Assembly: GCA_029953675.1 (NCBI GenBank)
Contig: JAMWBK010000001.1
Location: 2,356,001-2,420,000, forward strand
Source of the DNA: Rhodosorus marinus CCMP1338
Taxonomy: Eukaryota; Plantae; Rhodophyta
Direction: 5' to 3'
Length of the DNA: 64,000 nucleotides
A program made the translations under genes and the position numbers. Each line of letters starts with the position of its first letter. The first letter of the stretch is position 1. Below, piece after piece: positions 2,700-57,620 of the stretch. The notes below the pieces were generated by a model. The model was given only the letters and a program-made list of their open reading frames with translations. It was not told the origin of the DNA and ran no database searches.

Positions 2700-3040
2700 C
2701 GACTCTCCACTCACACCTCCCGCGACCGCGACTCGTCTACGCGGGGTGGGAGGTCGTCTATCTCACCTGTGATTAACCACTCTAACGTCGTCACTGGGCC
2801 AACTTATGGACGCCTTCCAGTTCCGGACTGCCGCCAGGATCTACCTGGGTTTGCACAGGCCCCTTGGCACTCTAATCGCCCTTCCTTCTCCCAAGGCTGA
2901 GGGAGTCGTATTGACGGTTGTGATTACCAATTTCTGGGCTCGTGTGGACTATTGACAGGTATCGTACGAAACGACGCACCTGTGAAGCACATCCAGAGCG
3001 AATATTTGAACAGGGTTGGCCACGCGGTTGAGGTTCAATA
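2700..3040 (+). mobile_element. Degenerate internal fragment of a family-B-like retrotransposon
   Basis: Diverged match to 43160-43500 (SPLTPPATATRLRG...AFQFRTAARIYLG...VEV). Confidence 0.75.
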
Positions 3041-3523
3041 GGAACTGCCCCGATCAGCCTCGGCCACCTGGAAACGCTTTTTTTATATCCTCGCCACCTG
3101 CGAAGTATTTTAATCCTTCGAAGACGAGAGTGCCTCCTCCATCCGCGTCGGCAACTGTTGCTGAAGATCAGTTGAACACGGCATATGCGCTCTTCTGCTG
3201 GAGAAACCTTTTGGAGGGGGGGGGGGGTGCGTGGGTGCTAAGTAGACAGATTGGGCATGTGAAGGCTCTAAAATACACAGCAGTCCCACCCAAAGGACAA
3301 GAGCTACCTTTTCCCTACTTGTATGAAGATATCTTGTGTCATCAATCCCCGCGCCGAACTTCGTCGGCCCTCCATTTCAAACATCTCTCGGTGGCTCAGG
3401 ACCAAAACCACCAATTCCTTCACACACACACAGAATTGGGAGAAACATCTACCTCCCTCAGAATCTATCCATTCCTTCTCCTGCCGCCCCTCGGGGATTC
3501 CCCCCCCCCAGACCTTGAATACG

Positions 3524-4825: not shown

Positions 4826-6298
4826 TCATCTGGACAATGCTACGATCTGTTTAATATCACCCCACAGACCCAAGGGAAGGGCAATGCATCCAACCACTAT
4901 CAGCAACACGCTTATGGCGGATAACAGGTGCTCCTTGCCCTCTCGCTTCTTCAGGAAGACTTTAAGGTCCAGTATTCCCGGCCAAATGAAGCAGGTCTGC
5001 GACGCGAGGATGGACGAAACGAACCCGAGGTACGTCTGGAAAGACGGAATCGCCACGTTGACCAGGACAACGAAGGACATTGTAGTCGAAGTCCACAACA
5101 ACCACCATAGCATTGCTGCGGGCTTCAGCACAGTCAGGGGCGCCACTTTGTAAGGAGCGTTCTTCTTGCCGAAGATGAGCCTCTTGAAACTGGGCTCAAT
5201 AGCTCGCTGTGCAGCATACGTGAAAATATTTCCCGAAAGAAGGATTCCAATGGACGCATGGATGATGATGCAAACCATGCTCACCGTCTTCGCCGTACCA
5301 GGTTGAAGCGAGTCGATGTAGGGCGATTGCAACCAGCTCGCATCTCCTGCCATGCCGTACACTACCGAACCCACTAGCGCGTATAGCACGCAGCATGTCG
5401 ACTGCGACAGGACAAGAGAGTACTTGAATCGCTCCACATACTTCATCGAGCTCATAATCTCGAGGAACATCACAATTCCCGAATACGCGTACACAATGTC
5501 CATCGCTGCAACCATACAGTCGCTCAGCTTGTACTCTGAGAAAAGCACGTGGTTTCCGATTGGGTACAGATCCGGATTCCTCACCATGTTTCCAATCACG
5601 ACGAACGAAATGAAAATCGGTATTATGATGGTCAATATAGCTACGACCGACGTCAACGCCATAGCCTTGAAGCTCCTCGCCTGTAGAACCAGCAGCGAAA
5701 CCGCGCCAGCGACCACCATCCATTCCTGAAGGCTCAAACTTGACCCGGCAAAAAGCGAGTTCCATGCCGACGACTGCGTGTAGTTGAATGCAGAAGTCAG
5801 GAGGAACATAAGCGGGTAGGTATTGCACCTTGCAAAAACTAGTCCTTTCTTCCCGAAAACTCCCAAAAACAGCTGTGGGTAACTCGTCGCGGAAGCTACG
5901 TACTTGGTTCGTAGCCGGTGCAAAACTAGACCCGCACAAATTGTAAGCACCGCGCAGAGCACGTTGATCAGATGCGCAGGGATCCATCCCAGCGTCGCGA
6001 AAGAATTGGGAAACGATAGGACCCCGTTTCCCACCATGTCCACTACGAGCAGGAAAAACGCAAGGAGAATGGTTAAGTTCTCTGCGTGTCCGCCTTCCCT
6101 GTCCTCCGCATCCCCTTTCTTCTCATCTGCTTCTATGTCAGAATGCCCACTCATGTCTGAACTGATAATTGCGCTGTCATCCACGTTCGAGTCCGACTCT
6201 GCGACGCATTTCTTCGGCTCCTCATTGCCTTCAGTTGAGGCCTGGACGACAGCAGCCTCCCCCATAGTTGATGTTTCTACCACACACGAATCCGCCAT
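4826..6298 (-). CDS. Amino-acid transporter, AAAP/Aa_trans-like (490 aa)
   Basis: Intronless ORF with about 11 hydrophobic segments, an acidic N-tail and the motif VDMVGNGVLSFPNSFATLGW; first ATG at 6298. Confidence 0.9.
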   Translation of the reverse strand: MADSCVVETSTMGEAAVVQASTEGNEEPKKCVAESDSNVDDSAIISSDMSGHSDIEADEKKGDAEDREGGHAENLTILLAFFLLVVDMVGNGVLSFPNSFATLGWIPAHLINVLCAVLTICAGLVLHRLRTKYVASATSYPQLFLGVFGKKGLVFARCNTYPLMFLLTSAFNYTQSSAWNSLFAGSSLSLQEWMVVAGAVSLLVLQARSFKAMALTSVVAILTIIIPIFISFVVIGNMVRNPDLYPIGNHVLFSEYKLSDCMVAAMDIVYAYSGIVMFLEIMSSMKYVERFKYSLVLSQSTCCVLYALVGSVVYGMAGDASWLQSPYIDSLQPGTAKTVSMVCIIIHASIGILLSGNIFTYAAQRAIEPSFKRLIFGKKNAPYKVAPLTVLKPAAMLWWLLWTSTTMSFVVLVNVAIPSFQTYLGFVSSILASQTCFIWPGILDLKVFLKKREGKEHLLSAISVLLIVVGCIALPLGLWGDIKQIVALSR

Positions 6299-6423
6299 AC
6301 TTGCAAATCTCTCCAACAACGAACTCCGTCAATCTTCTGTTTAAAGTACTTCAGAAATGAATACTGCACTAGGTATTGTTAATACTTCTGCCTTCCCAAC
6401 TGTCAAATGTCCGACGTGGATCC

Positions 6424-12619: not shown

Positions 12620-12742
12620 AGTTTCTAGCAACATTATGCGCAGAGGCGCGCCGCCGTTGCCTGGGCTTACATGCTCTTCTCCTTAGCCCCTAGTTCCCTT
12701 TTACGTCTTGCGTAGCGCATCAGGCTATGTTAGTAAAACCAC
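12620..12742 (+). mobile_element. Old B-like 3' fragment (tail AGTAAAACC)
   Basis: AEARRRCLGLHA plus 3'UTR stem variant gtcttgcgtagcgcatcaggc. Confidence 0.8.
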
Positions 12743-12870
12743 TTTGGCGATATTCCAGCGACATGCTTTCCGAGGCGCGCCATCGGCGCCTGGGGTTGCA
12801 TACTTCCCTCCCTAGTTATTAGTTCATCTTCACGCCTTGCGTAGCGCTTCAGGCTATGCTAGTAAAGTCC
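12743..12870 (+). mobile_element. Family B 128-bp 3' fragment inserted in the preceding tail
   Basis: 11-bp TSD AGTAAAACCAC at 12732-12742 and 12871-12881. Confidence 0.95.
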
Positions 12871-13249
12871 AGTAAAACCACCATCACCACCACCAGCTAT
12901 TGATATGCCACATTGAAGACATACCAATACTGAATGAATGTTCACGTCAATAACGGTGATCTTGATTTGAGAGTACACCCCGCCATCTTCATTTCTTCCT
13001 CATCGACACGCCAGTGGCATTTGCCATGTAGCATTGTCGTATCTGTTCCCCAGGAACTGTCACGGAGTGGCTGCTCTGGTTGAGCGGGAAATTCGTGAGA
13101 GTTGTTAGAAGAAGATATTCCGGGGGCGATGATGTTTATTCGGCGCATGCCTGGTAATTGCGCTCGTCTGGGGATACGAAAAGAACTAGCAGGCGTCAGG
13201 TTGTATAGAAAATGCGTGACATTGTATCTAGATAGATGATTGTGTCTGC

Positions 13250-13719: not shown

Positions 13720-14272
13720 TCTGGTGACAGTGTAAAAAAGGTGCTAAGAAGTATAAAAGTCCCAAGAGGGTACCGCATAAAATTGGAGTCCCCCCGATGA
13801 AGACATTATTGGCAGACACTGAGGGCACTGCCAAGAAGAAACGAGAGCCGGACACAGCCGTACTATCAATGACCAGAAAAGACGTTGCAGGTGGGCTGGA
13901 GAATCGAAAATCACTGGACAAAAGATCGAAACGATATTGGCAGAAGCTGCGGGCACCGTCTCCCAAAGAAGTAACAAAATAGCCGGACATACCGGTGCTG
14001 TCAACTACCTGAAAGGACGTTGCGGGCCCTTTTTCCGCGTTCTGTCTCTAATGCAGATCTGAGACAGCTACACCTTCCGGTGGAGCTCCCACGGGCTACG
14101 TCAACTGCGGTCGCGCCTGCTCGATGTATGTGGTTTGTCGTTTACCGGAGTAGACTATTTAAGCGCTCCAACTCTGTCTTAGGCTTACGGAGTAGGCGTG
14201 TGGGGGGACTTGGGGTTCGAAAGTCCGGGTTTCGATTGAAAATGAAGAGGAGGTGGAAGAGACTTAGGGACT

Positions 14273-14611
14273 ATGAAGACCTGGTTGGTTGTTTTTCTTT
14301 TGTATGCGCATGTCGCTCATGTCGCAGCGAGCGTATTGGTACACACGGGTAAAGGATCCGACAGCAAGACCGGCCGGGGAATTGTGCAGAGAGCACGGAA
14401 GACCGGCGTGTGCCCCATTTTTCGCCTTTTTAAGGAAGCTGGGAGACTATTGACGGACTGTATACTGCGGGAGAACTGAAGCTGGGAGACTATTGACGGA
14501 CTGTATAATGCGGGAGAACTGAAGCTGTGAGACTATTGACGGACTGTATACTGCGGGAGAACTGAACACGAAGACCGTCCTCGTGGATGGAAACCGATGC
14601 CTCAGTGTCAG
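14273..14611 (+). pseudogene. 5' part of a secreted Cys-rich/RTX-repeat gene (exon 1 14273-14348, intron 14349-14434, exon 2 from 14435)
   Basis: Signal peptide MKTWLVVFLLYAHVAHVAA. A GTAAAG...TTTAAG intron joins in frame (G+GA, then SWETIDGLYTAGEL). The frame VDGNRCLSV continues across the family A TSD into RVTARSPFQIVDG at 19349. TATTTAA lies ~115 bp upstream. Confidence 0.7.
14435..14563 (+). repeat. 3 x 43 bp tandem repeat
   Basis: gaagctg(g/t)gagactattgacggactgtata(c/a)tgcgggagaact at 14435, 14478 and 14521. Confidence 0.97.
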
Positions 14612-14856
14612 TTTTCGGTTTCGTGAGGGTGTATGGTGCTGGCTTTTGGTGGTTTTGAGCCGCAATTGTGTTCTTCGGTGGGAGGCGCTTCTTTCTGCAG
14701 CCTTTCCCCCGCATCTTCTAGTGGTGTGGTGCGTGCTGGGGGTTGCTAGCGCCCCTTGGAGGTCGTGGTGGTTTTTCTTTGGTTGCAAACGTTGGGAACA
14801 AGTTCTCTTTTTGGGGGTTTCGTGGGGGAATCGGTTTTTCACACCTTCCAATCGTT

Positions 14857-16068
14857 ATGGTTGGGGTTTCCCCACCCATTCCGGCGGACGGAGCCGTTCT
14901 CTCAGCGCGTGTGGAGCTCAGCGTGGGCGGGTTTAGTACCGCGGCCACCCTCACGGACTGCGCTGACGAGTTGGCCCATGGGATCTGCTCGAAACTGACG
15001 AGTCTTCTTGTGACTGCTTCCCAGGAACACCGCCTGCCCCTGCTGATCGCCTATTTGGAGCGCTTCTCCGCCTCCGCGCCTGCCCCATACCCCCCGGTGC
15101 CCGTCCCCGCGGATCCGCACGGTACAGCGGGGCCTGCCTCCACCCGACCCGAGCGCTCCGCTCCGGTCATTCCTGATTCCGACTGGCCTACCCCTATTCA
15201 AGGACAGACGCCTCCTGGGCCCGCGTCGGGCCCGAATCCTGCTCCCTCCAGTGCCCCACGTGCGACCTATTCGCAGGTCCTGCGCAGGGGCTCTTCTGAA
15301 CAACGCACGACGGCAATGGTGCGTATGATGCCACAACACATCCCTATTGACTCTTCTCGCCAACTATCTCCGTTCCACTTTGTTTGGATGACGAACGTGC
15401 GTCCCCAGACCCCCTCTCGTGGTCGGGGCCGCGCGCCCGTCCACTACCGCGATTTTCGCGACACCATGGCTTCCTCCCTTGGGGTCGCCCCATCTGAATT
15501 CCTATATGTGGACTTCACGGGCCCTCATGCCTGTTTTCTTGTTACTGACTCGGCTTACCAGTTCCTTCAATCGCTTGTAACCACCCCCGCGCCCCAGCGC
15601 TCTGCTCTGGCCAACATGATACTGACTCGTCCTCATGTCTCTTTGTTTGTCGAGTTCGATCGTTTTGACGCCGGCTGGGTTCCTCCGTCGGCCTTGCAAA
15701 ACCTGGATGCCTCGCAGGCTTCGGTTGTCGCGCTACACACTCATGCGGCGCGGCTCTCGCGCATACAGGCCAGCCTCTTCGCGCGTTTTCCTCCTCGCGG
15801 GGTCCTCCGCACCGCGCTAGAGGCCTTCCTCTCCACTGAGGCCACCCTGCTGGAAGCCCACCCTGCGTTTGACTTTCTGCCGCCGACTCTTGAGCACCCT
15901 TCCTCCCCTCGCCCTGTCTCCGAGGCTCGTGACACCGACATGGCAGGAGCACCATCGGCCTCTCCGAATCCGCTGGCTCTGGACACCCTCAGTCAAGACT
16001 CCGCTGCTGAAAACCCTGTGTCTACTTTCTTCAGGTCTTTTAGTTCCTTCGTGCGCCCCCCCACGTAA
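14857..16068 (+). CDS. Family A ORF1 (403 aa as sequenced; about 432 aa ending at 16156 if the C7 run at 16056-16062 has one extra C)
   Basis: N-terminus MVGVSPP matches B MVGISPH and D MAGVPPR; shared core SYxxVLRxG...F(V/L)WxxNVRPQT...RDFRDT(M/F)AxSLG. Confidence 0.8.
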   Translation: MVGVSPPIPADGAVLSARVELSVGGFSTAATLTDCADELAHGICSKLTSLLVTASQEHRLPLLIAYLERFSASAPAPYPPVPVPADPHGTAGPASTRPERSAPVIPDSDWPTPIQGQTPPGPASGPNPAPSSAPRATYSQVLRRGSSEQRTTAMVRMMPQHIPIDSSRQLSPFHFVWMTNVRPQTPSRGRGRAPVHYRDFRDTMASSLGVAPSEFLYVDFTGPHACFLVTDSAYQFLQSLVTTPAPQRSALANMILTRPHVSLFVEFDRFDAGWVPPSALQNLDASQASVVALHTHAARLSRIQASLFARFPPRGVLRTALEAFLSTEATLLEAHPAFDFLPPTLEHPSSPRPVSEARDTDMAGAPSASPNPLALDTLSQDSAAENPVSTFFRSFSSFVRPPT

Positions 16069-16148
16069 GCGTCGTGCGGCTCCTGAGCCTCCCTCCGAGG
16101 CACCTCCTCCGGATATTCGATCTCCCTTCCCGACTGAGGGGAGGCCCG

Positions 16149-19100
16149 ATGTCTGAGTCTTCCTCCTCCGCGTGCGTGTCGTCCCGGTTACCCCTGTTTA
16201 CCAGTGACCGCTCAGCCTGGCATGAGCGTGTTCTCTCGTGGTTTTCGCACCTTGTCGCCTCCTACCCGGACGGTTCCCTTCCCCTTTGTCGTCAGAGCAC
16301 GGCCGTACGGCTCCCTCGTCGACTTCATAAGCCCCTAGGATTGGTGTTGGATTTTCTCTGGCAGCAGGTCGCCGCGAACCCTCACTGCTCTCTTCGCTGG
16401 GAACTCTTGTTCTTTTTTCCCCGCCTCGTGCTCACCTCCTCTACCGTCCCCCTCAACCCACATCCTCGCCGGGTCCACCCTCGCCGAAAACTGCAAATGT
16501 TCCTTTCCGGCGACTTTGAGGACCTCGAACGTCTTTATTTCGCTTCTCTCTCTTCCTTTTCTCCTAGTGCTCCCTCAGCTTTTAGGTCTTCTCGACAGAA
16601 TCGGGCGCGTCACGCGGTGGCAGGCGGTGATCTGCGGCGGGCAGCCGGGATCCTCCAGCAGCGGCAACCTGTGGTTCCATACTCCGATGATCTTTCTTCA
16701 CCGCTCCGTTTGCTCTTTCCCTAGGAAGGCTCCCCTTGGGACTCCTCGTTTGAATCAGTGTTGGAAGAGTACCGCGCCGCGCCACATCCCAGTGCGCGGT
16801 TAGTGGTAAATCTGGAGGCGGTGCGTGAGTTGGTTCATGATGCTCCGAAGGGCCGTTCCCCAGGGCCCTCGGGGCTGCGGGTGGAATATCTCCGTTTCTT
16901 AAGTGATGTAGGTTTGAAGGCGTTGGCGTGGGTGGTCGAAGCGCTTGTGAATGGTGATCCCCTGTGAGTGTGCGTGGTTCTTGGTCGGGCGTTCGCAGTT
17001 GTGTCTGCTTTCGAAGCCCGGCCACACGGCCTCGAGCCCTGCTATTCGCCCTATGGGCCTGGTTGAGGTGGTCCGCAAATTGGCGGCGCGATGGTTAGTG
17101 AAAATCCTGGTTCCCGAATCCCGCCGTTTCTTTGGGCACGTGCAGTTAGGCGTGGGCTATCGTGGTGGCTGTGAGTTGTTGTCTGTTTTACTCCGTTCGG
17201 AAATGGCGTACTCCCCAGATTCTGGGCTCCTCTCTGTCGATTTTACCAATGCGTTCAACCGCGTCTCTCGTCCGGCTCTCATGCACGTGGTGCGCGAAGT
17301 CTTCCCTGTAGGCTTTCCCTTTGTTAGTAGACTTTATTCTCCGCTTGGTCGTGGGGCTACCTATGACACCCTTGGCGCTTCCTCACACACGTTTGCGGCG
17401 CGCACAGGCGTACAACAGGGTGATCCCTTGTCCCCTTTCCTACATGCCTGTGGACTACAACTCGTCTTGCTTTGTCTTCGCTCCGAATTCCCGCAGGTTC
17501 GTACGGTTGCATACCACGACGACGTGTGCCTCCTGGGGCCCCCTGATACTCTAGCACTCGCTTATGATCGTCTCCGCTCCTTGGCTTCGCGGGTTGACCT
17601 GGAGGTTAATCATCACAAATCGTTCTACTGGGGAGGTGTAGCTGCACAAGAGCAGCAGGTACCTGCGTCGTTCCAGGATATTTGGAGACCGGATGGTTTT
17701 GTCCACTTAGGCATCCCCTACGGGTCGCCGTCCTTCGTTGAAGGCGAGTTGCTGCAGCTCCTCGGTAAGCACAGACAGCTGGTTGCAGAGCTTCGACGGC
17801 TACCTCCGGGCTTTCTCCAGTGCTCGTTGTTGCTGTTTCGGTATTGTTGCAGTCAGCGGTTAACCTATTGGCTTCGCTCACTTCCAACTCATTGGGGCCG
17901 GTGGTTGGCCACTCGTGCGGATGCTGAAAGTTTCCGTGACCTGGGGTATTTTCTCGATGAAGAGCTGAGCGTTCTGCCGCGACCCACCTGTGATGTTGTG
18001 CGCGCCCAGGTAGGCCTCCCATTGCGATTGGGGGGACTGGGCCTCTGCAATCGTGTTGTGGTCCAACCTGCAGCCGCAGTAGGGGCCTGGGGAACCGCAC
18101 TTCCCACTTTGAGCAGCTTGGGTATCTCGAAGTTCCGCAATTTGATGGCGAGCCTCTCGCGGGGTGTCTTGCTTCCCAGCGTACCGGAAAGCGCCCAAGA
18201 CTTGTTTCTGGAGCTCCAAACCCCCTGAATTCCTGTACTAGTCTCCCGAAACCGTTCAACCCCGTATTCCTGACTGGCGAGCTGTATTTGACCGCTCTCG
18301 AGGCTCCGCCCCGGGGATTCGTCCTGCGCCTGAACCTGTTCTAGGGGAGATTGACCCAGTGGTTGCCGCAGAAGAAGAAGTTCCAGTTGATCCTCCTGAT
18401 GATTCCCAGCGCGCTGGGAGCCGAGCTCAAGCACGCACGGATGCGCTGCAAAATATCCTTTCTTGGGACTTGCACCGTGCTGCATATGGCCGACTCCTCG
18501 CGCAGATGGTCTCATCTTCTCGCGCTCGCGCCCGCCTACGTAGTCTTGGAGGGGTTATTAGCTCTCAGTGGCTCATGACCGTACCAGCCTTTCCGCCACT
18601 CACACTGTCGGATTTCGAAGTGCGTACTTCACTGCGCTTATACCTCGGCTTACATCAGCCCCCTTGGCCGTACGAGATGGGTTCGTCGTGCCCTCTCTGC
18701 TCTCAGACTGAAGACAACGCAGATTTTGGCGCCCACCTGCTCGCTAGTTGCCCGGCGGTGAAAGGTGCTCGAACCCGCCGCCATACACGGATCTTGAACC
18801 TGTTATACCGGGAACTTCGGCCTATAGTCCGGCAAGCCGGTCTGGAAATCGAACGTGAGAAACCTTTACCCGTCGCGGACTTTCAAAATGATGAACGCCG
18901 TGTAGCCGACCTGGTGATCACCTGTGACGACAGCCGCCGTACCACATACGTTGATCTTGCTGTTCCTAACCCTCAAGCTAGTCGTTATCTCCCGGCTGCG
19001 GGGGAGCGCCGTGGATCTGCCGCCGCCAGCATGAGACGCCGCAAAGAGATCAAATACGCGGGGGCTTTGTCTTCCCCTGGTGTTCGTGCTTCGGCACTAG

Positions 19101-19288
19101 CACATCGCTTGGTACCCCTGATCATTGAGTGCTTTGGGTTCATGGACTCTGTTGGTTCTCGCTGGCTTCGGGAGTTGTTCCGCGAACGCCCTGACCGTCT
19201 TCAATCGTTGTTTACCCGCTTAAGTTTCCTGCTGTGGCGCATGAATGCCGCTTTGATGTTGGAGGCGCGAGTACTTCGCCGCGCTTAG
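16149..19288 (+). pseudogene. Family A ORF2: reverse transcriptase + CCHC + restriction-like endonuclease (disrupted)
   Basis: GRSPGPSG, IRPMG, VDFTNAFN, GVQQGDPLSP, AYHDDV, LPLRLGGLG, CPLC..H....C, RTRRH, RVADL..YVDLA..KEIKY; in-frame TAG at 16722-16724 and frameshifts near 16960 and 18220-18245. Confidence 0.92.
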
Positions 19289-19348
19289 TCTTTTTTTCCC
19301 CTCGGGTTTTTTTTTCAGCCTCCGATTAAACCATTCATTCAGTGTCAG

Positions 19349-20775
19349 GGTTACAGCCCGTAGTCCTTTCCAGATCGTGGACGGAGAAGTCAGGTTCGGT
19401 TTCTATCGGGATTGTGCTGACCTGCCTTTTGGAAACGCAAAGTTTATCACAGTGGTGACGGGCAGAGGGACTGCGGAAGCTCTTTTCTGTGCGGATGAGG
19501 TCGTCCAGTAGCGACAATTGCTGCGATAAGGATCTGTGTCTTGTCGTGAAAGCGTCAATTGAGTACAATACTCGCAATCGCGTATTCTCTTTCCAGAGGA
19601 TGAATCAGGAGACCGGGTTCGCTCAATCCAAGTTTCACAGTAAAACCCAAGTGCCGGGGTAGCAAACAACTCAAGTGCCCGATAACTTTCAAATGTCTTC
19701 GCAAGATCGATGGGACTAGTGGGGACTACGAGTTCATAGGGACAAATGCTGATGAACTCATTTACACGGGGGCCGGTGAAGACATTGTTCACGCCTGAGG
19801 TGGGTACGATGTCATATACGGTGGGGAAGGTGAAGACGAGCTAAGGGGAGGAAATGGTCCGGATTTTCTCTCTGGGGGATCAGGCGATGACCTGCTCATC
19901 GGGGTAAGGGTAGTGATGGAATGGAAGGCAACGAGGGAAACGAACGTGCTTCGTGGAAGTAGCGGGAACGACACAATGAACGGGAACGAAGGAAACGACA
20001 ATATATCGGGTTGAGACGGAAATGACAGAATCAACGCAGGCATGGGCAACGATGTTACTAATGCTGGTCTAGGTAACGACACGATTGTAGACAACAACAT
20101 TGCCACAACCCCATGGGAACATTATCCGGGTTTCTACCGCTTTCTCCTGCAGGGCAACTCAACCATCGATGAGGGAGAGGGCAATCGAAGCGTTCGCGAG
20201 GGACATAAACGTTAAGGGTGGTGATGGGGATAACTCTTTCAGTGGACGAGGAAACGATTATACCACTCCATGTCCAGTTATTTTTACAATTTTGCTGACG
20301 GTAGCATTCATATGGGAGATGGGGCCCCCCTCACTGGGGGCCTGAGACTGGTCGTAGGTGAAGGAGACGACTACTACCACGCTTACGACATTTCAACATT
20401 TCATTGGGTAGTGCGTACATGGGGAATGGCAACGATGAAGCTGTTTTCACGGATGTTCCGAGTTTTTCCTGCGGTAAAACCAAAATTAGGCGCTTGCATC
20501 TCGGAACGCTTGCATCTCGGAAATGGAGATGATCATGCTAAAGTACAGCAACTTTGGGTACGCGGGGCCACTGGCGAGATATCAGCTGGAACAGGGGATG
20601 ACACACTTGAACCTGATCTTCATGGGGAACGTCGACGGTGGTCCTGGCGATTTTACATTCCCCCCGATAACCCAGCCAGCCAAAAGGAGGGTTTGAGGTC
20701 AAATTTCCTACGAACCTTCTTGGAGGACCAGGCGATGATTACCTCTACTTTGCTTTCCAGTGAGATGAACGGTTT
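19349..20775 (+). pseudogene. 3' part of the Cys-rich/RTX-repeat gene
   Basis: FCADEV...NCCDKDLCLVV, then GGEGEDELRGGNGPDFLSGGSGDDLLIG, GNEGND, GMGNDV, GLGNDT; several stops and frameshifts. Confidence 0.8.
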
Positions 20776-22150: not shown

Positions 22151-22218
22151 AGTGCTGGTTTTACAAGCGTGGCCTGACGGTAGGTCACCTACTCGACGAA
22201 TGGTTAAGGTCACCTACT

Positions 22219-35165: not shown

Positions 35166-35594
35166 TCAAGCAGCAGGCCCCGGGTTATAATACGCCAACG
35201 GTGCTTGAGCGTAGGCTGGAACGTAGGTTAGCAGTGCTGGACCGTAGGGTGCTGGACCGTAGGGTGCTGGACCGTAGGGTGCTGGACCGTAGGGTGCTGG
35301 ACCGCTGGGTGCTGGACCGTAGAATGCTGGGCCGCTGGGTGCTGGACCGCTGGGTACTCCACCGTAGGGTACTCCACCGTAGGGCTTGGGTACTGCGCCG
35401 TACGCACCGTAGGATGCTGCAGGTTGGGGTATAAATTGCCGTTGAGCCGCGTTCAGTGCTGCTTCCCGTTCAGCTGGATCGATTCCTGCTGCCTTCCGTT
35501 CAACCGGCTCCGCTTCTGGCACCATTACCGCCTCTCCCATTAGCATTCCAAAGGACAGCGCCAAAAGGGCCAATGCTGCAACCGTCATCTTCAT
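35166..35594 (-). CDS. Secreted Tyr/Gly/Pro/Ala-rich repeat protein, (YGPAP)n (142 aa)
   Basis: Signal peptide MKMTVAALALLALSFG; 15-bp coding tandem repeat at ~35230-35385; Kozak-like AAACATG; TATATAAA ~150 bp upstream (35744-35751). Confidence 0.85.
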   Translation of the reverse strand: MKMTVAALALLALSFGMLMGEAVMVPEAEPVERKAAGIDPAEREAALNAAQRQFIPQPAASYGAYGAVPKPYGGVPYGGVPSGPAPSGPAFYGPAPSGPAPYGPAPYGPAPYGPAPYGPALLTYVPAYAQAPLAYYNPGPAA

Positions 35595-36938: not shown

Positions 36939-37404
36939 CGAGCGAATGGTTTAATCGGAGGCTGAAAAAAAAAACCCCGAGGAGAAAAAAAGACTAAGCG
37001 CGGCGAAGTACTCGCGCCTCCAACATCGAACGAATGGTTTAATCGGAGGCTGAAAAAAAAACCCCGAGGGGAAAAAAAGACTAAGCGCGGCGAAGTACTC
37101 GCGCCTCCAACATCAAAGCGGCATTCATGCGCCACAGCAGGAAACTTAAGCGGGTAAACAACGATTGAAGACGGTCAGGGCGTTCGCGGAACAACTCCCG
37201 AAGCCAGCGAGAACCAACAGAGTCCATGAACAAAGCGGCATTCATGCGCCACAGCAGGAAACTTAAGCGGGTAAACAACGATTGAAGACGGTTAGGGCGT
37301 TCGCGGAACAACTCCCGAAGCCAGCGAGAACCAACAGAGTCCATGAACCCAAAGCACTCAATGATCAGGGGTACCAAGCGATGTGCTAGTGCCGAAGCAC
37401 GAAT
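36939..37404 (-). mobile_element. Family A 3' fragment containing a second nested family A 3' fragment (37027-37230)
   Basis: Outer TSD ACTTATACAA at 36929-36938 and 37405-37414; removing 37027-37230 restores contiguous gccgctttg|atgttggagg. Confidence 0.92.
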
Positions 37405-38886: not shown

Positions 38887-38946
38887 CGGGTTGTACCCGG
38901 AAGCCGTGGTACCCCGAACCCGTTGTACCCCGAACCCGTTGTACCC
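38887..38946 (+). repeat. 16-bp minisatellite (left part), unit ~GCCGTTGTACCCCGAA
   Basis: Four degenerate units; same unit as 44013-44198. Confidence 0.8.
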
Positions 38947-39078
38947 TTTGATCTTTGCGCACGGGCAATGTCTCTCAAGTGAGGTTCTACCGATGAGCGA
39001 CTATTGCTGGTTGAAAACTATTCCAACCGCGCCCGTTCACTACATGTGACCGTGGCAATTTTTGGCTACAACTCTCCC

Positions 39079-39199
39079 CCAGCGACATGCTTTCCGAGGC
39101 GCGCCATCGGCGCCTGGGGTTGCATGCTTCCCTCCCTAGTTATTAGTTCATCTTCACGCCTTGCGTAGCGCTTCAGGCTATGCTAGTAAAGTCCAGTTG
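39079..39199 (+). mobile_element. Family B 3' fragment that hosts the full-length copy
   Basis: Matches 43886-44002; its tail supplies the left TSD. Confidence 0.95.
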
Positions 39200-39442
39200 A
39201 GTTGTCGAGGATTGGGGTTTTGTTTCTTTTTCGGTCGCGAGCGTGTTCGTTTACGGGAAACGCTTCCTCTGGTACGCCTTCCCCTCGATTTTCCGCGGGG
39301 CGTCGTTTGCATTTGCAACTACTTCTGTCTTCCGGGTGGGTGAGTTGCGGGGCCTTTCCTATTTGGGTTGGGTTTGGTCGATTATTCTCTCGGTGCGGTT
39401 TCATATTAGTGGTGCAACGTTTCCTTGGCGGATTCCCTCAGG

Positions 39443-40852
39443 ATGGTAGGGATATCTCCGCACTCGACGGAGCCTCCTCCCAAGGAGGCACTGCCAGGTG
39501 GGGGACTCCGTGTTCGCCTCAGCTGCGGCACGTTTTCTTCCGAGGTTGACTTGGAAGGCGCTTCTGGCACCCAGGCGCGTTCACTTATCTCCGCTGTCAC
39601 CAGCCTGATCACGGCTGCGAGTGATCGTGGAGTGCTCCCTCAGCTCACCCAGAAGCTAGGTGGGCTGGAATCGGGATTGCTGGCCAGGTCAAATTCAAAT
39701 TCGGACGAGAATTTGAATTGCCCCAGAGTGGCAGCGTTGGCTGAAGGCAGTCAACATCCGGTCAATCAACATGAACCTGTCCCGGGACAGGCGAGGGCTG
39801 TTGCTTCTGCGCGGGACAGTACGACGTTGGGGAGCGGCAGGCCGGGCCAAAACGCGCTTCAGCGCTCGGGGACTCGAGGCAATGGTGGTGGTGACTGTGC
39901 GGCAACCGGTGTGGAGGAGACTGCAGCTGTGGACTTCCCTCTCTTGGACCAGCCCTCAGGTGGTCACCAGCTCCCGGCTACTTCGGGGGCACGTGGTGGC
40001 CGCAACGGGGGCGCTTCGTACGCATCAGTCTTGCGGAAGGGCACCACTGCCACACGTACGGCGGCTATGCTCCGTTTCATACCATCTCGCGAGCCTCAGG
40101 ATGGACCTGTGGAGACCACTCTCCAATTTCTGTGGGTGCGAAATGTCCGGCCCCAGACTACACGAGGACAGGTTCCGTCTATGCGAGACTTCCGGGACAC
40201 TTTTGCGGAATCGTTAGGGTGCAGCAGGGGTGATTTCTTCTTCGCAAACTATGAGGGCCGCGATGTGCTGTTTTTGGTCTCCGCAACCGCCGCCAAGTAC
40301 CTGGAGGCCTTGCTGGCGAAGCCTACCGAGCAGTGGCCTGAGAGCGCCCGGTGGCTGCGCTGCAACCCGCAGGTGGTTTTGCACTTCGATTTTGACCGTT
40401 TCTCGGGCAATTTCCTGTCTCCGGGAGAAACGGCAGGGCTCTCTGAGCATGAGAGCAGCGTGAAGGCGGCAGCGATCCATTGGCTACGGATTCAGCGCCT
40501 TGAGAGGATCTTGTTGGCGCGGTTCCGGTCGGGCCCTCGTCACCTGCGCATGGCGGTTTCCAGTTTCTTCGATCTGGAGAGGCGACTTGTGCTGACTTCG
40601 CGCTACAAGACAGAGCTGCAGCGGGTGGGGATTTTGGAGGGCTCTGCTTCCAGCACTACTTCCAGCGAGAGTGGTGAGGCAGGGGAGCAGACTGAGGGCA
40701 TGGCGGTGGAGGACGCCCAGGTTACTTTGCTGAAGCCCGCGGGATCCGTTCCGCGAGCCTCGCGGAGTGGGAGGCTCACGACTTTGGTGCGGATAGGAGG
40801 TAAGAGAGCGAGGACCGACTCCCCCGGGTCTAAGGGGGAGAAGCACGATTAG
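39443..40852 (+). CDS. Family B ORF1 (469 aa), intact
   Basis: ATG 39443 (MVGISPH); homologous to A and D ORF1; basic C-terminal GGKRART. Confidence 0.88.
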   Translation: MVGISPHSTEPPPKEALPGGGLRVRLSCGTFSSEVDLEGASGTQARSLISAVTSLITAASDRGVLPQLTQKLGGLESGLLARSNSNSDENLNCPRVAALAEGSQHPVNQHEPVPGQARAVASARDSTTLGSGRPGQNALQRSGTRGNGGGDCAATGVEETAAVDFPLLDQPSGGHQLPATSGARGGRNGGASYASVLRKGTTATRTAAMLRFIPSREPQDGPVETTLQFLWVRNVRPQTTRGQVPSMRDFRDTFAESLGCSRGDFFFANYEGRDVLFLVSATAAKYLEALLAKPTEQWPESARWLRCNPQVVLHFDFDRFSGNFLSPGETAGLSEHESSVKAAAIHWLRIQRLERILLARFRSGPRHLRMAVSSFFDLERRLVLTSRYKTELQRVGILEGSASSTTSSESGEAGEQTEGMAVEDAQVTLLKPAGSVPRASRSGRLTTLVRIGGKRARTDSPGSKGEKHD

Positions 40853-40883
40853 CGCTCCAGGCACGGCTGCGAGGTCGCAGCCT

Positions 40884-43800
40884 ATGGATCTACAGTCTTA
40901 TGTCCTGAAGGAGGGCGGAGACTGGGGCATTTGGCGTACGCGTTTTCGGAGTTGGCTCCGGCGGTGGATTTCTTTGGAAGGAGGCTCGCTTCCCCTCCGT
41001 GGGGGCATTCCCCCAGTCGTCCTTCCTCGTGGAGACCTTCTGGTAGCTGGAACCATTCTCGATTTCATCTTCACGAGCCTGGCTCGCAACATTCGGGACA
41101 CAGTCATTTGGGTTTTTCTGGGGTCATGCCGCGCATGATTCTGGCCCCCATTCACACATCGGAGCGCAGATGGCGAGTACGAGACCGACTGGCCCTGTTC
41201 TTGAAGGGAGACTTCGAAGTACTACAGCGCAGCTATTTGGCGTCGTCAGCACCATCCGCCCGTCGGACTCGGCATGGCACAGTGTCGCCCGTGCCAGCTC
41301 GAGTACAGAAATTGGTAGCAGTGGGCGATTTAAGTCGAGCGGCGCGGGTTTTGGAGGGCCAGGCGCCTGTCCTCCCCTACGATGATAGTCTCGCCCAGAC
41401 GGTGTCGTCTTTGTTCCCTGAGTCCGACGTGGATTTGTCCCCTGAATTCGAGGTATTCTTGGACCGTCCGGAGTTGGCCAGGTTTCGCATCGATCTGACG
41501 CTCAGTGAGTCTGACCTGGAGGATTTGCTTCGTACCTCGCGTCGGGGACGCTGTCCTGGACCCTCCGGACTAAGAACAGAGCTATTGCAGGCCCTGAGCC
41601 AGCCTGGCCAGAGCGCGCTTCTGAGGATCCTTAACAAGTTGTTCCAGGGCGTATCGGGTGCGTCCGCGCCATGGGAACATCTCCGGCAGGCACAGCTTTG
41701 CTTGCTCACGAAACCTGACCACCAGCCGGCCCACCCGCGTCTCCGGCCGATCGGGATGGTGGAGAGCCTACGGAAGTTAGCCGGGAGGTGGCTATGCCAG
41801 CGCCTTCGCCAGCGCGTCACAGCTTTTATGGCGCCCTTGCAAGTAGGGGTGGGATTTTCTGGGGGTTGCGAACTGATCACCCATGGGATCGAGCTAGAAC
41901 GCGCCAGTAGGCCGGAGTGGGGAGTCTTGGTGGTTGATTTCCGGAACGCATTCAACAGCGTGTCGCGGACGCATGCGCTAGAGGTGCTCCGACGTGTGTT
42001 TCCGGAGGCGTGGCCGTTTCTATCGGGTATTTACGGAGGGGAGAGCCTCCCCTACTTGACAACGGAGGGCACTGTTTTTCAAGCATATACTGGCGTCCAA
42101 CAAGGCGACCCTTGCGGACCTCTTCTTCATGCCTGTGCCCTACAGCTCGTACTTTTACGTCTTTCGACTGAGGTCTCGGATCTTCGAATCTGCGCGTACC
42201 ACGATGACGTAACATTGCTGGGCACCCCTGACACCCTGGCTAGGGGACTGACCGCGATCGAAGCGATTGCACGTCGCGTCGGTTTGACTGTGGAAACAGA
42301 AAAATGTCGCTTTCTCCCCCCCGAGGGACGTGTCGCTGAACTCTCTGCCACCCACTCTGCGACTAATCAGCGAACGTGAAGGGTTCGAACACCACGGCGT
42401 CGGATTGGGGACTGACAACTTTGTCCAAGCATCCTGCGAGCGAGTTTTGGCACGGCACAAGCAACTCACCGACGCCATTGAGCACCTACCCGACAGCATG
42501 CTGCAATCGGCGTGCTTGCTTTCCCGCTTTTGTGCCGGTCCCAGACTCAACTACTGGTTGCGCAGCCTGCCTCCAGCTTGGGGCGAGTGGATCGCGGCTA
42601 AAGCCGACGAAATGACCCTGCAACACTGGGGAACGCTCTTGGATGAGCCCCTCGATCTTGAAGCTGCTCCCGACAGGGACTTTATTCGTGCACAGATCGC
42701 TCTACCGTTGCGATTAGGGGATTCGGCGTCGCAGACCGTGGGCTGGTATGCTCGCCAGCGGCGGTTGCCTCCTGGGCTACCGCGCTGCGAACGTTGGTGA
42801 CCTTCCGGATGCGAAGTGCCTGCCTCTTGGCTCGAGCTTTGACCAACGAGGATCCAGTGACCCTGCCGCCCCCGCTTTTGACAATTTATGATGGTCTTCA
42901 ACACGCGTTCAGGAGGTGCAACGCCGTGCCGGACGCAAATCGGTCCCGCTTTCGTTCCTGGAGGGAGCTGTTATGGGGACGAGCTGAAGCGATTGAGGAT
43001 TGTCCCCTCGACCGAGTTCTTGCCGATGACGGAGAGGCTAGCCCCGGGTCCCCTGTTGCAGACTACCCGGGTTTGAGCCGATTGTGGAGCTCCCGCACTG
43101 ATGTGATTCAACATAGCCTCACCTGGGGCCAACACAGTGCCGCTCACACAGTCATGCTCAATTCTCCTCTCACGCCACCTACCACTGCCGCTCGTCTCCG
43201 CGGCATGGGAGGCCACCTCTCGCACTTGTGGTTAACCACTCTACCGTCGTCATTGAGTCATCGTCTCGATGCTTTCCAGTTCCGTTCTGCCGCACGCATC
43301 TATCTCGGTTTGCCACAGGCTCCGTGGCACTCTAATCGGCCGTCTTTCTGTCAGGGATGTGAGAGCCGGATTGACGCTTGTGGCTACCACTTCCTGGGTT
43401 CCTGCGGACTGTTGCGAGGTCTCCGTACGAGGCGTCACACTCGCCTCAAGTACATCCTCAGCGAATTTTTGACTCGGATAGGGCATACGGTTGAGGTTGA
43501 GTCGGAACTGCCCAGATCCATCTCGGACTCTGCACCGCCCCGTTGTATAGCCGATCTCCTCGTCTCCGACGCTGCTGCCAGACGCTCAACATATGTGGAC
43601 CTTGCGATTACCTGCCCCGTGGCCAGCGCCCACCTCACCGCAGCCGCCCGCCGCCGGGGGGCCGCGGCTTCAGCCCTTCGAAGAGTTAAGGAACGACGGT
43701 ATGCTGAGAGCATGGCCAGTCTGCCTTGCGCTGAGGGTCGCTCTCACCGGTTCCAGCCATTCATTGTGGAAAGCTTTGGTCACGTCGATAAGTCGGGTTT

Positions 43801-43954
43801 AGAGTGGTTGCGGAAATGTTTTGCTGAGCATCCTACTGAATATTTGGCGCTCTTGAGGCGTTTAAGTGTCTCCCTTTGGCGATATTCCAGCGACATGCTT
43901 TCCGAGGCGCGCCATCGGCGCCTGGGGTTGCATGCTTCCCTCCCTAGTTATTAG
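40884..43954 (+). pseudogene. Family B ORF2: RT + CCHC + RLE, with single-base frameshifts at ~41120, ~42315 and ~42720 (all in homopolymer runs)
   Basis: MDLQSY... N-terminus homologous to A ORF2; GRCPGPSG, LRPIG, VDFRNAFN, GVQQGDPCGP, AYHDDV, CQGC..H....C, RTRRH, CIADL..YVDLA..KERRY, FQPFIVESFG. Confidence 0.92.
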
Positions 43955-44012
43955 TTCATCTTCACGCCTTGCGTAGCGCTTCAGGCTATGCTAGTAAAGT
44001 CCAGTAAAGTCC

Positions 44013-44198
44013 AGTTGTACCCCGAACCCGTTGTACCTCGAAGCCATTGTACCCCCGAAGCCGTTATGCCCCGAAGTCGTTGTACCTCGAAGCCAGTGTA
44101 CCCCCGAAGCCGTTGTGCCCCGAAGTCGTTGTACCCCCGACGCCATTGTACCCCCGACGCCATTGTACCCCCGACGCCATTGTACCCCCGACAGCCGT
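44013..44198 (+). repeat. 16-17 bp minisatellite (~11 units, GCCRTTGTACCCC(C)GAM)
   Basis: Directly visible tandem units, homogenised toward gccattgtacccccgac at the right end. Confidence 0.93.
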
Positions 44199-44357
44199 TG
44201 GAGACTCCAAAGGCGGTTTCGGATATTAAATTACATTATATTTAAACTGTCCAACAACAAGCAGTACAATATATTAAAAAACCTAGAAATGGTTTGAAAT
44301 TTTTTTGCGGAACAAGAGTGACAGGAAAAGTGGGACACCCCCTCACTGCTGTAGTTA

Positions 44358-44475: not shown

Positions 44476-47450
44476 GGACTGGACTTTACTGGACTTTACT
44501 GGACTTTACTAGCATAGCCTGAAGCGCTACGCAAGGCGGGAAGATGAACTAATAACTAGGGAGGGAAGCATGCAACCCCAGGCGCCGATGGCGCGCCTCG
44601 GAAAGCATGTCGCTGGAATATCGCCAAAGGGAGACATTTAAACGCCTCAAGAGCGCCAAATATTCAGTAGGATGCTCAGCAAAACATTTCCGCAACCACT
44701 CTAAACCCGACTTATCGACGTGACCAAAGCTTTCCACAATGAATGGCTGGAACCGGTGAGAGCGACCCTCAGCGCAAGGCAGACTGGCCATGCTCTCAGC
44801 ATACCGTCGTTCCTTAACTCTTCGAAGGGCTGAAGCCGCGGCCCCCCGGCGGCGGGCGGCTGCGGTGAGGTGGGCGCTGGCCACGGGGCAGATAATCGCA
44901 AGGTCCACATATGTTGAGCGTCTGGCAGCAGCGTCGGAGACAAGGAGATCGGCTATACAACGGGGCGGTGCAGAGTCCGAGATTGATCTGGGCAGTTCCG
45001 ACTCAACCTCAACCGTATGCCCTATCCGAGTCAAAAATTCGCTGAGGATGTACTTGAGGCGAGTGTGACGCCTCGTATGGAGACCTCTCAACAGTCCGCA
45101 GGAACCCAGGAAGTGGTAGCCACAAACGTCAATCCGGCTCTCACATCCCTGACAGAAAGACGGCCGATTAGAGTGCCACGGAGCCTGTGGCAAACCGAGA
45201 TAGATCCGTGCGGCAGAACGGAACTGGAAAGCATCGAGACGATGACTCAATGACGACGGTAGAGTGGTTAACCACAAGTGCGAGAGGTGGCCTCCCATGC
45301 CGCGGAGACGAGCGGGAGTGGTAGGCGGCGTGAGAGGAGAATTGAGCATGACTGTGTGAGTGGCACTGTGTTGGCCCCAGGTGAGGCTATGTTGAATCAC
45401 ATCAGTGCGGGAGCTACACAATCGGCTCAAACCCGGGTAGTCTGCAATAGGTAACCCGGGGCTAGCCTCTCCGTCATCGGCAAGAACTCGGTCGAGGGGA
45501 GAATCCTCAAACGCTTCAGCTCGTCCCCATAACAGCTCCCTCCAGGAACGAAAGCCGGACCGATTTGCGTCCGGCACGGCGTTGCACCTTCTGAACGCGT
45601 GTTGAAGACCATTATAAATTGTCAAAAGCGGGGGCGGCAGGGTCACTGGATCCTCGTTGGTCAAAGCTCGAGCCAAGAGGCAGGCACTTCGCATCTGGAA
45701 GGTCACCAACGTTCGCAGCGCGGTAACCCAGGAGGCAACCGCCGCTGGCGAGCATACCAGCCCACGGTCTGCGACGCCGAACCCCCCTAATAGCAACGGT
45801 AGAGCGATCTGTGCACGAATCAAGTCCCTGTCGGGAGCAGCTTCAAGATCGAGGGGCTCATCCAAGAGCGTTCCCCAGTGTTGCAGGGTCATCTCGTCGG
45901 CTTTAGCCGCGATCCACGAGCCCCGAGCTGGAGGCAGGCTGCGCAACCAGTAGTTGAGTCTGGAACCGGCACAAAAGCGGGAAAGCAAGCACGCCGATTG
46001 CAGCATGCTGTCGGGTAGGTGCTCAATGGCGTCGGTGAGTTGCTTGTGCCGTGCCAAAACTCGCTCGCAGGATGCTTGGACAAAGTTGTCAGTCCCCAAT
46101 CCGACGCCGTGGTGTTCGAACCCTTCACGTTCGCTGATTAGTCGCAGAGTGGGTGGCAGAGAGGCCAGCGACACGTCCCTCGGGGGGAGAAAGCGACATT
46201 TTTCTGTTTCCACAGTTAAACCGACGCGACGTGCAATCGCTTCGATCTCGGTCAGCCCCCTAGCCAGGGTGGCTGGGGTGCCCAGCAATGTTACGTCATC
46301 GTGGTACGCGCAGATTCGAAGATCCGAGACCTCAGTCGAAAGACGTAAAAGTACGAGCTGTAGGGCACAGGCATGAGGAAGAGGTCCGCAAGGGTCGCCT
46401 TGTTGGACGCCAGTATGTGCTTGAAAAACAGTGCCCTCCGTTGTCAAGTAGGGGAGGCTCTCCCCTCCGTAAATACCCGATAGAAACGGCCACGCCTCCG
46501 GAAACACACGTCAGAGCACCTCTAGCGCATGCGTCCGCGACACGCTGTTGAATGCGTTCCGGAAATCAACCACCAAGACTCCCCACTCCGGCCTACTGGC
46601 GCGTTCTAGCTCGATCCCATGGGTGATCAGTTCGCAACCCCCAGAAAATCCCACCCCTACTTTCAAGGGCGCCATAAAAGCTGTGATTCGCTGGCGAAGG
46701 CGCTGGCATAGCCACCTCCCGGCTAACTTCCGTAGGCTCTCCACCATCCCGATCGGCCGGAGACGGGGTGGGTCGGCTGGTGGTCAGGTTTTGTGGGCAA
46801 GCAAAGCTGGGCCTGCCGGAGATGTTCCCATGGCGCAGACGCACCCGATACGCCCTGGAACAACTTGTTAAGGATCCTCAGAAGCGCGCTCTGGCCAGGC
46901 TGGCTCAGGGCCTGCAATAGCTCTGTTCTTAGTCCGGAGGGTCCGGGACAGCGTCCCCGACGCGAGGTACGAAGCAAATCCTCCAGGTCAGACTCACTGA
47001 GCGTCAGATCGATGCGAAACCTGGCCAACTCCGGACGGTCCAAGAATACCTCGAATTCAGGGGACAAGTCCACGTCGGACTCAGGGAACAAAGACGACAC
47101 CGTCTGGGCGAGACTATCATCGTAGGGGAGGACAGGCGCCTGGCCCTCCAAAACCCGGGCCGCTCGACTTAAATCGCCCACTGCTGCCAATTTCTGTACT
47201 CGAGCCGGCACGGGCGACACTGTGCCATGCCGAGTCCGACGGGCGGATGGTGCTGACGACGCCAAATAGCTGCGCTGTAGTACTTCGAAGTCTCCCTTCA
47301 AGAACAGGGCCAGTGGGTCTCGTACTCGCCATCTGCGCTCCGATGTGTGAATGGGGACCAGAATCAGGTGCGGCATGACCCCAAGAAAAACCCAAATGAC
47401 TGTGTCCCGAATGTTACGAGCCCGGCTCGTGAAGATGAAATCGAGAATGG
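44476..47450 (-). mobile_element. Family B 5'-truncated copy 'C' (~3 kb, most of ORF2)
   Basis: Near-identical to 41054-44002; frameshift at ~46765; CGA>TGA at ~46511; tail (AGTAAAGTCC)3 AGTCC followed by D-type AGTAAAGCCC units at 44457-44475. Confidence 0.96.
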
Positions 47451-57498: not shown

Positions 57499-57620
57499 GG
57501 GCCCGTAACGACATCGTCGAGTAAGGAATTTGGCAGCAATGATATCATCGAAGCTAAGGAGAACTGGAGAGATAAAATTTGAAGCAGACGAGAAAACGAG
57601 ACACCGATACCTTAAAAACA

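Follow-up and report, generated by a model that had tools for sequence, protein, structure and literature searches.

Long interspersed nuclear elements (LINEs) that carry a restriction-like endonuclease (RLE), the "early-branching" type, are usually described as single-protein, site-specific retrotransposons, and a dispersed life style with two proteins is tied to the later LINEs with an apurinic/apyrimidinic endonuclease (APE). A locus in the red alga Rhodosorus marinus CCMP1338 raises the question of whether an RLE-type element can also encode two separate proteins. The stretch analysed here (64,000 nucleotides of contig JAMWBK010000001.1, positions 2,356,001 to 2,420,000; hereafter the window, with position 1 its first letter) contains an insertion at 14612-19338, element A, which an earlier sequence-only reading interpreted as a CRE/R2-type retrotransposon of the class without long terminal repeats (non-LTR) and with two open reading frames (ORF1 and ORF2), proposing a reverse transcriptase (RT) phylogeny and separate searches with the two ORFs. 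Our analysis indicates that 14612-19338 is likely an inactivated full-length copy of an autonomous, two-protein, CRE-group non-LTR retrotransposon that would have moved by the mechanism set out below.

Element A is a 4,727 bp insertion on the + strand. A perfect 10-bp direct repeat, TCAGTGTCAG, lies immediately on either side (14602-14611 and 19339-19348) and represents its target-site duplication (TSD), so the element occupies exactly 14612-19338, as the sequence-only reading had it. The G+C content of positions 14001-20000 is 0.55-0.58, compared with approximately 0.47-0.50 in the adjoining 2-kb intervals, and the same region has a strong T-over-A skew. A blastn comparison of 14401-19500 with the window returned one full-length copy and eight shorter fragments that share a common 3' end, which is the signature of 5'-truncated LINE copies. 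The parts of the element are as follows, where B, B' and C are related elements elsewhere in the window and L001 is a public contig, all described further on (UTR, untranslated region).

14602-14611, no strand: 5' target-site duplication TCAGTGTCAG, identical to the 10-mer at 19339-19348
14612-14856, + strand: 245-nt 5' UTR of element A, from the end of the TSD to the conserved start of ORF1
14857-16068, + strand: ORF1, 403 amino acids plus TAA, homologous to B ORF1 (E 7e-36)
16069-16148, + strand: ORF1-ORF2 spacer, 80 nt, with a frame change (31 nt in B and L001)
16149-16721, + strand: ORF2 N-terminal region, 191 amino acids, ending at the in-frame TAG 16722-16724, homologous to the ORF2 N-termini of B, C, L001 and database relatives
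16725-18228, + strand: ORF2 RT and thumb, in two frames, with a Pfam RVT_1 match and a profile alignment to R2 RTs
18242-19288, + strand: ORF2 linker, CCHC and restriction-like endonuclease, in a third frame, 38% identical to the B' C-terminus (E 4e-49)
19289-19338, + strand: short 3' UTR and non-poly(A) tail ...CCATTCAT(TCA), an end common to eight 5'-truncated A-type fragments
19339-19348, no strand: 3' target-site duplication TCAGTGTCAG, identical to 14602-14611

The ORF1 frame is open from 14722 to 16065, with its start at ATG 14857 (MVGVSP...) and its stop at TAA 16066-16068. Its N-terminal half is proline/low-complexity sequence, a conserved core of approximately 200 amino acids lies at 15265-15861, and the start MVG(V/I/A)SP is kept in A, B and L001. 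ORF2 starts at ATG 16149 (MSESSS...) in a frame different from that of ORF1, continuing in a second frame through the RT (16951-18225) and in a third through the CCHC-nuclease part (18242-19285). Its reading is broken by the in-frame TAG (16722-16724), by a frameshift inside a CCCC run (~16957) and by two or more further lesions within 18225-18241. Element A is thus a full-length but inactivated copy whose ORF2 cannot be translated. The frameshift at ~16957 could be an assembly error, being in a homopolymer; the TAG and the 18.2-kb lesions cannot be errors of that kind. Accordingly, of the arrangement proposed from the sequence alone, the layout of an ORF1 ahead of an RT-CCHC-RLE ORF2 stands, and a single intact ORF2 in this copy does not.

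Whether the two ORFs are genuine is best judged from the related copies in the window:

39200-44014, + strand: full-length family B element with a (TAAAGTCCAG)n tail, ORF1 at 39443-40852 (TAG) and ORF2 from ATG 40884 in the +1 frame
44488-47450, - strand: 5'-truncated family B copy (B') with a 653-amino-acid open RT-to-RLE frame (46510-44552)
~47455-52170, - strand: copy C, a diverged B-like element (~80% identity to B) whose ORF1 and ORF2 are arranged as in B by three-frame comparison

Both ends of C are approximate (blastn aligned 47505-51661 with B, and a motif similar to the 5' end of B, picked out by eye, served to set the 5' end), and this copy is probably what the sequence-only reading called family "D". 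The B copy at 39200-44014 is broken at 42377-42661 and, at ~41120, is 1 nt short. Its ORF1 frame stays open for 508 codons beyond the TAG at 40850, which at first looks like one nonsense mutation and would suit a single-ORF, CRE/R2-like element in which "ORF1" is the N-terminus of a polyprotein and the ORF1/ORF2 break is a disabling mutation in decayed copies. Such a view is also favoured by the other disabling lesions in all window copies and by the finding that trypanosomatid CRE elements once called two-ORF are mostly single-ORF (PMC12278014). However, the homologue of the A ORF2 N-terminus (W..R..SW...GSLPL...LPR...LDF) is read in the +1 frame in B, from ATG 40884 (MDLQSYVLKEGG...), and three-frame comparison places it in the +1 frame in copy C (minus strand) as well. 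The same frame change is found in L001, an independent contig of Logan assembly SRR22824305, where the ORF1 stop (1606-1608), a 31-nt spacer (1609-1639) and the ORF2 ATG (1640) are laid out identically to the B stop (TAG 40850-40852), 31-nt spacer (40853-40883) and ATG, and ORF2 runs uninterrupted for 510 amino acids up to the contig end. In element A, a stop of its own is followed by an 80-nt spacer, and the frame shifts the other way. Moreover, the open continuation in B stems from the 1-nt deficit, which B shares with C (41115-41125 and 50150-50160; a T5CT/G4 homopolymer) and which is absent from B' and L001. On the three-frame comparison with C, L001 and A, we rejected the view that B ORF1 and ORF2 are one frame cut by a single TAG, and we regard a single-ORF origin of these elements as very unlikely. 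An alternative genetic code or stop-codon readthrough was also considered, and became unneeded after the ORF2 frame had been located. The homopolymer frameshifts (A at ~16957; the 1-nt deficit of B and C) could be long-read consensus errors or the result of recurrent slippage.

A, B, C and the independent contig L001 hence all keep an ORF1 stop, a short spacer, a change of frame and an ORF2 ATG. Two ORFs in different frames might still yield an ORF1-ORF2 fusion protein through programmed ribosomal frameshifting in a short overlap, as in the gag-pol of LTR elements, and the ORF2 frame is indeed open for 22-53 nt before the ORF1 stop in A (from 16044), B (40797) and L001 (1568). Nonetheless, A would need a -1 shift and the other three (B, C and L001) a +1 shift, and these opposite directions argue against a conserved programmed frameshift. 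No slippery heptamer was seen by eye at the junctions (no systematic scan for slippery sites or downstream structure was made), and in every family the homologous ORF2 begins, past the stop, with a conserved ATG. A fusion product is therefore improbable, although slightly less so than a single-ORF origin.

Protein comparisons point in the same direction as the layout. The A and B ORF1 proteins are 30% identical (E 7e-36), and the C-termini of the A and B' ORF2 proteins are 38% identical (E 4e-49). Ratios of nonsynonymous to synonymous divergence (dN/dS, Nei-Gojobori) were 0.16 (B versus L001) and 0.18 (B versus C) for ORF1, and 0.15 and 0.17, respectively, for ORF2, which places ORF1 under the same purifying selection as ORF2. 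This bears on a third possibility, that the ORF1 region is foreign to the retrotransposon and represents a captured host gene fragment or a second element in a composite. ORF1 has no similarity to known transposable element protein families and only four database relatives, and the window is full of nested and tandem insertions, all of which would favour this view. Yet ORF1 occupies the same position, after a 5' UTR of ~245 nt and before ORF2, in three families that are 30-38% identical in protein sequence; a single TSD encloses ORF1 and ORF2 together; and ORF1 and ORF2 show equal divergence and dN/dS between families. A foreign ORF1 is the least credible of these alternatives and can hardly be entertained. 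The conserved layout, the homology between A and B, and the dN/dS values together argue that ORF1 is a selected, integral gene of these elements. On these comparisons the two-ORF layout is genuine, and the element is predicted to encode two separate proteins.

The second of these proteins, ORF2p, can be assigned to a well-known type. ORF2 has a Pfam RVT_1 match (E 7e-11), and the RT motifs in element A are RPMGLVE (17047-17067), FTNAFN (17236-17259), GVQQGDP (17407-17427), YHDD (17509-17526) and GGLGL (18031-18045). A CCHC motif (C-x2-C-x11-H-x4-C) at 18689-18751 aligns to the R2 CCHC, and the RLE motifs RRH (18776-18790), AD (18902-18916), VDLAV (18947-18964) and K..KY (19034-19057) align to the R2 RLE. 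A profile built from the A and B ORF2 pieces and two database relatives matched the R2 proteins of known cryo-EM structure (9nl3, 9dou) continuously over RT fingers, thumb, linker, CCHC and RLE (E ~6e-30), and matched human L1 ORF2p over the RT only (E 1e-14). These RT matches, together with RVT_1, identify an RT of the non-LTR/LINE type. Upstream of the RT, there was no Pfam match to Exo_endo_phos, the APE domain, or to any other domain. A regex scan detected no C2H2-like zinc-finger motif in the A ORF2 N-terminus, and none was evident on inspection of the B translation; by comparison, among 146 database relatives analysed, C2H2-like motifs were present in 32 of the 46 that have at least 300 amino acids upstream of the RT. 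ORF2p (~1,030 amino acids) would thus comprise an N-terminal extension, RT fingers/palm, thumb, linker, CCHC and a PD-(D/E)xK-type RLE, and is predicted to lack the DNA-binding module, zinc-finger or Myb, that its relatives carry at the N-terminus. The RT, the CCHC-RLE region, the TSDs and the 5' truncation support classification as an RLE-type non-LTR retrotransposon; consistent with this, the copies have no terminal repeats and share a common 3' end. An exhaustive search of public data with the ORF2 profile returned 5,211 representative clusters at E <1e-30, and among the matches listed more than 150 reached E <1e-100, nearly all spanning RT to RLE; the one named match is a Closterium gene model. 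The ORF2 type is thus very widespread, and given this abundance, only the combination of an ORF1 with a zinc-finger-less ORF2 is unusual.

To place the RT, we used 22 reference sequences from the RLE-LINE alignment of Mahbub et al. 2017 (PMC5678591, supplementary file 10), which cover R2/R8/R9, R4/Dong, SLACS/CZAR/CRE1/CRE2, CRE-II (Cre-1_BM and Cre-1_HM), HERO and NeSL/Utopia. In blastp comparisons, Cre-1_BM was the best match for both A and B (95 and 106 bits, respectively), followed by SLACS, CRE2, Cre-1_HM and CZAR. Hidden Markov models (HMMs) of the groups gave scores for A and B of 93 and 103 bits for CRE-II, 78 and 85 for trypanosomatid CRE, 44 and 62 for NeSL and 36 and 58 for R2, and with no match of the R4 and HERO models to either. 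In a neighbor-joining tree, A, B, 24 database relatives, CRE-II and SLACS/CZAR/CRE1/CRE2 were separated from R2, R4, HERO and NeSL/Utopia in 200/200 bootstraps, and A and B were monophyletic, also in 200/200. A grouping of A, B and CRE-II that excludes trypanosomatid CRE appeared in only 33/200. These scores and the tree support membership of A and B in the CRE group, with CRE-II the nearest by RT score, and bear out the CRE side of the initial CRE/R2-type call. Affiliation with the R2 clade does not agree with the opposite side of the 200/200 split or with two ORFs, and no rRNA was found in the window. R4/Dong and HERO are likewise set apart, both by the lack of HMM matches and by their position in the tree (EhLINE is outside the reference set).

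The way in which the copies ended and inserted also departs from that of site-specific elements. Every A copy in the window has the 3' end ...GCCTCCGATTAAACCATTC(A/G)TTC(A/G), i.e., CCATTC(A/G)TTC(A/G), and none carries a poly(A) tail; the family B tail is (TAAAGTCCAG)1-3, so the absence of poly(A) noted from the sequence alone holds for both families. Four A copies are flanked by TSDs of 7-11 bp, namely, TCAGTGTCAG, GTCACCA(GA), (AGT)AGGTGACC and TTGTATAAGT, the last three being called as TSD-like repeats. The duplications themselves agree with the sequence-only reading, and their measured range is narrower than the 7-15 bp it gave. The four are unrelated to each other in sequence, as expected from its claim that no host target is conserved, and do not fit insertion into a specific site such as a spliced-leader gene or telomeric repeat. 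Three nucleotides at the very end of the A tail also belong to its TSD, and B copies are often placed after the tails of other B copies. GTCA occurs inside three of the four A-family TSDs (14602-14611, 13722-13730 and 22205-22215), with GTCAC or its complement GTGAC in two, which hints at a weak nicking preference on too few sites to judge.

Several further observations concern the sequences at and around the A ends. A possible 9-bp long-range stem (19258-19266 with 19318-19326; GUUGGAGGC and GCCUCCGAU) would enclose the ORF2 stop and a U-rich loop; it is kept in all eight copies, among which no compensatory changes were found. Three 43-bp tandem units lie just upstream of element A, at 14435-14566. 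The sequence at 2630-3835 matches the A 3' end at 99% identity over its last 312 bp, and 2704-3055, directly upstream of that A-like end, resembles family B at only 75%; a further diverged family, or a 3' fragment formed by recombination, may be present here.

ORF1p (~400 amino acids) appears to be a lineage-restricted protein without a recognisable domain. No Pfam domain was detected in ORF1, the faintest signal being xRRM (E 0.24) in one family member. The separate search with an ORF1 profile returned only four related proteins, all on short Logan or JGI contigs; it was word-indexed, so distant relatives were possibly missed. One public contig (L002) carries an ORF1 homologue (P0004) that is 73% identical, and the contigs of this protein and of P0001, P0002 and P0005 are too short to reveal neighbouring genes. 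Comparison of the ORF1 profile with 167 database proteins of the ORF2 type gave no matches to an ORF1-like region, and exact-protein look-ups of A ORF1 and A RT for further genomic copies returned nothing on record. AlphaFold models of ORF1p were of low confidence (pLDDT, the predicted local distance difference test, of 43 and 55 in two runs) and repeatedly gave a beta-alpha-beta-beta-alpha unit with a helical hairpin after it. The best Foldseek matches of these models were RRM-like RNA-binding domains (YxiN, DbpA and Mex67), at non-significant E values of 0.1-0.2.

Comparison with known systems helps to define what is shared. CRE-II (Cre-1_BM of Bombyx mori and Cre-1_HM of Hydra) has the best RT similarity (95-106 bits by blastp and 93-103 bits by HMM) and shares with A and B the RT motifs (RPIAVGE-like, DFxNAFN, QQGDPLGP and YLDD/YHDD) and a C..C..H...C-type CCHC, but identity is only about 25%, and A and B form their own branch (200/200). 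The trypanosomatid CRE clade (SLACS, CZAR, CRE1 and CRE2) belongs to the same RT group, with an RT followed by a C-terminal RLE. SLACS has historically been described with two ORFs. Trypanosomatid CRE elements use one specific site in the spliced-leader gene and have zinc-finger motifs, a poly(A) end and mostly a single ORF (PMC12278014, PMC5814959), whereas the algal A and B have unrelated insertion sites, no zinc fingers, repeat-unit tails and a separate ORF1. In a survey from 2025, most trypanosomatid CRE elements, among them ones once called two-ORF, had a single ORF (PMC12278014). In addition, EhLINE1 of Entamoeba has an ORF1 and an RLE-bearing ORF2 and inserts non-specifically, producing TSDs (PMC3118788, PMC1635306), and HERO includes many non-specific families (PMC4640811). 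Hence, SLACS and CZAR, the two-ORF exceptions named in the sequence-only reading, are not the only such precedents among RLE elements. An ORF1 followed by an RT-RLE ORF2, non-specific insertion and TSDs are common to EhLINE1 and the algal elements. EhLINEs are placed in the R4/Dong group, and since the R4/Dong HMM had no match to A or B, the two-ORF layout of EhLINE1 and of the algal elements is probably convergent.

R2 (9nl3, 9dou and 8gh6) has the same domain order as A and B, RT-linker-CCHC-RLE, and differs in its single ORF, its N-terminal zinc-finger/Myb region and its 28S rDNA target. Target-primed reverse transcription and template jumping are both documented for R2. The ORF1p of APE-type LINEs (L1 and others) is, like that of A and B, encoded by a separate upstream ORF under purifying selection, and the A/B ORF1 core may be RRM-like as in those proteins, according to the low-confidence model. 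It differs in that there is no Pfam match to an ORF1 family and the predicted helical region comes after, not before, the putative RRM-like core. No description of Rhodosorus transposable elements was found in the literature searched.

Based on these comparisons, an autonomous two-protein element of this kind would be transcribed from an internal promoter in the 5' UTR and would express ORF1p and ORF2p from one bicistronic RNA, with ORF2 probably translated by reinitiation or leaky scanning past the 31-80-nt spacer. ORF2p would nick chromosomal DNA with little sequence specificity and reverse-transcribe its own RNA from the nick (target-primed reverse transcription, as in R2); the weak or absent target specificity is inferred because the zinc-finger module is missing. 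Priming would probably draw on the short tail, which consists of ATTC/GTTC repeats in family A and of TAAAGTCCAG units in family B, with help from microhomology between tail and target, and a staggered cut of the second strand would then produce the 7-11-bp TSDs. Frequent premature termination would account for the many 5'-truncated copies, and template jumping for the head-to-tail fragments and the chimera with a U4 small nuclear RNA (snRNA) described below. As the least supported step, ORF1p would probably act as an RNA-binding or chaperone partner, by analogy with the ORF1p of APE-type LINEs.

Some of the results weigh against this reading. The ORF2 of element A is untranslatable as it stands, so it is only through family B, B' and L001 that the A family can be inferred to have intact members, and several of the frameshifts, being located in homopolymers, may have arisen in assembly. 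The tree was computed from distances over 408 columns with the 22 references, a set without Ambal, Odin, Cnl1, EhLINE and Dualen. The function proposed for ORF1p finds no support in Pfam (no match), in the models (pLDDT 43-55) or in Foldseek (E ~0.1-0.2).

Compound insertions in the window may illustrate the template switching included in the proposed mechanism. A complete U4 snRNA (Rfam RF00015, 93.5 bits; 38951-39076) is linked head-to-tail with a 3' fragment of B that is 119 bp long (39079-39197) and that is itself joined to the full-length B, giving a compound that spans 38951-44014 and sits inside one ~16-bp satellite, with GTTGTACCCCGAACCCGTTGTACC on both sides. The compound looks like a template-switch chimera, to which the U6/L1 chimeras of mammals are analogous. 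We also considered U4 as an insertion target (cf. Utopia and U2), and rejected this in favour of a chimera because the same satellite flanks the whole U4 and B compound. Head-to-tail joints were found at 36944-37403 (- strand; three A fragments in a row), 12643-12876 (+ strand; an old and a young B 3' end) and 47440-47510 (- strand; the C 3' end abutting the 5'-truncated B'), which suggests RNA-to-RNA template jumping or preferential insertion at existing tails. The satellite that hosts the U4 and B insertion (CCGAAGCCGTTGTACC-like, ~16 bp) occupies 38890-38947 and 44014-44200, and a 15-bp satellite (GTGCTGGACCGTAGG-like) lies at 35204-35428. Elsewhere in the window, 54668-55543 and 57579-58445 are two ~70%-identical repeats with long overlapping ORFs on both strands (264-288 amino acids) that gave no Pfam match, and 4826-6319 (- strand) is an intronless ORF for a 497-amino-acid Aa_trans amino-acid transporter, 82% identical to Rhodosorus marinus proteins.

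EhLINE1 and HERO had already shown that RLE elements can have two ORFs or insert non-specifically, and what appears to be new here is the combination of a CRE-group RT, a lineage-specific ORF1 under selection, the lack of a zinc finger, repeat tails and dispersed insertion. A selected ORF1, no zinc finger and dispersed insertion in one CRE-group family would cut across the usual division between RLE-type and APE-type LINEs and would add, with EhLINE1, a second or third independent example of the way to a two-protein, dispersed life style, and the host group is one for which non-LTR elements are essentially undescribed in the literature searched. The U4 snRNA chimera and the head-to-tail fragments would show template switching by a CRE-type RT as it occurs in nature. 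In practice the gain is modest: better annotation of transposable elements in stylonematophycean genomes, and a compact RLE-type RT without a built-in DNA-targeting domain. More tentatively, A and B might represent a red-algal branch of the CRE group that lost the ancestral N-terminal zinc-finger targeting module of its single RT protein and gained a new, unrelated ORF1, possibly RRM-like, a scenario that we consider possible rather than probable. If true, a site-specific RLE element would have turned into a dispersed, L1-like, two-protein element, and the life style based on ORF1p and ORF2p would have had an independent, convergent origin outside the APE-type LINEs.

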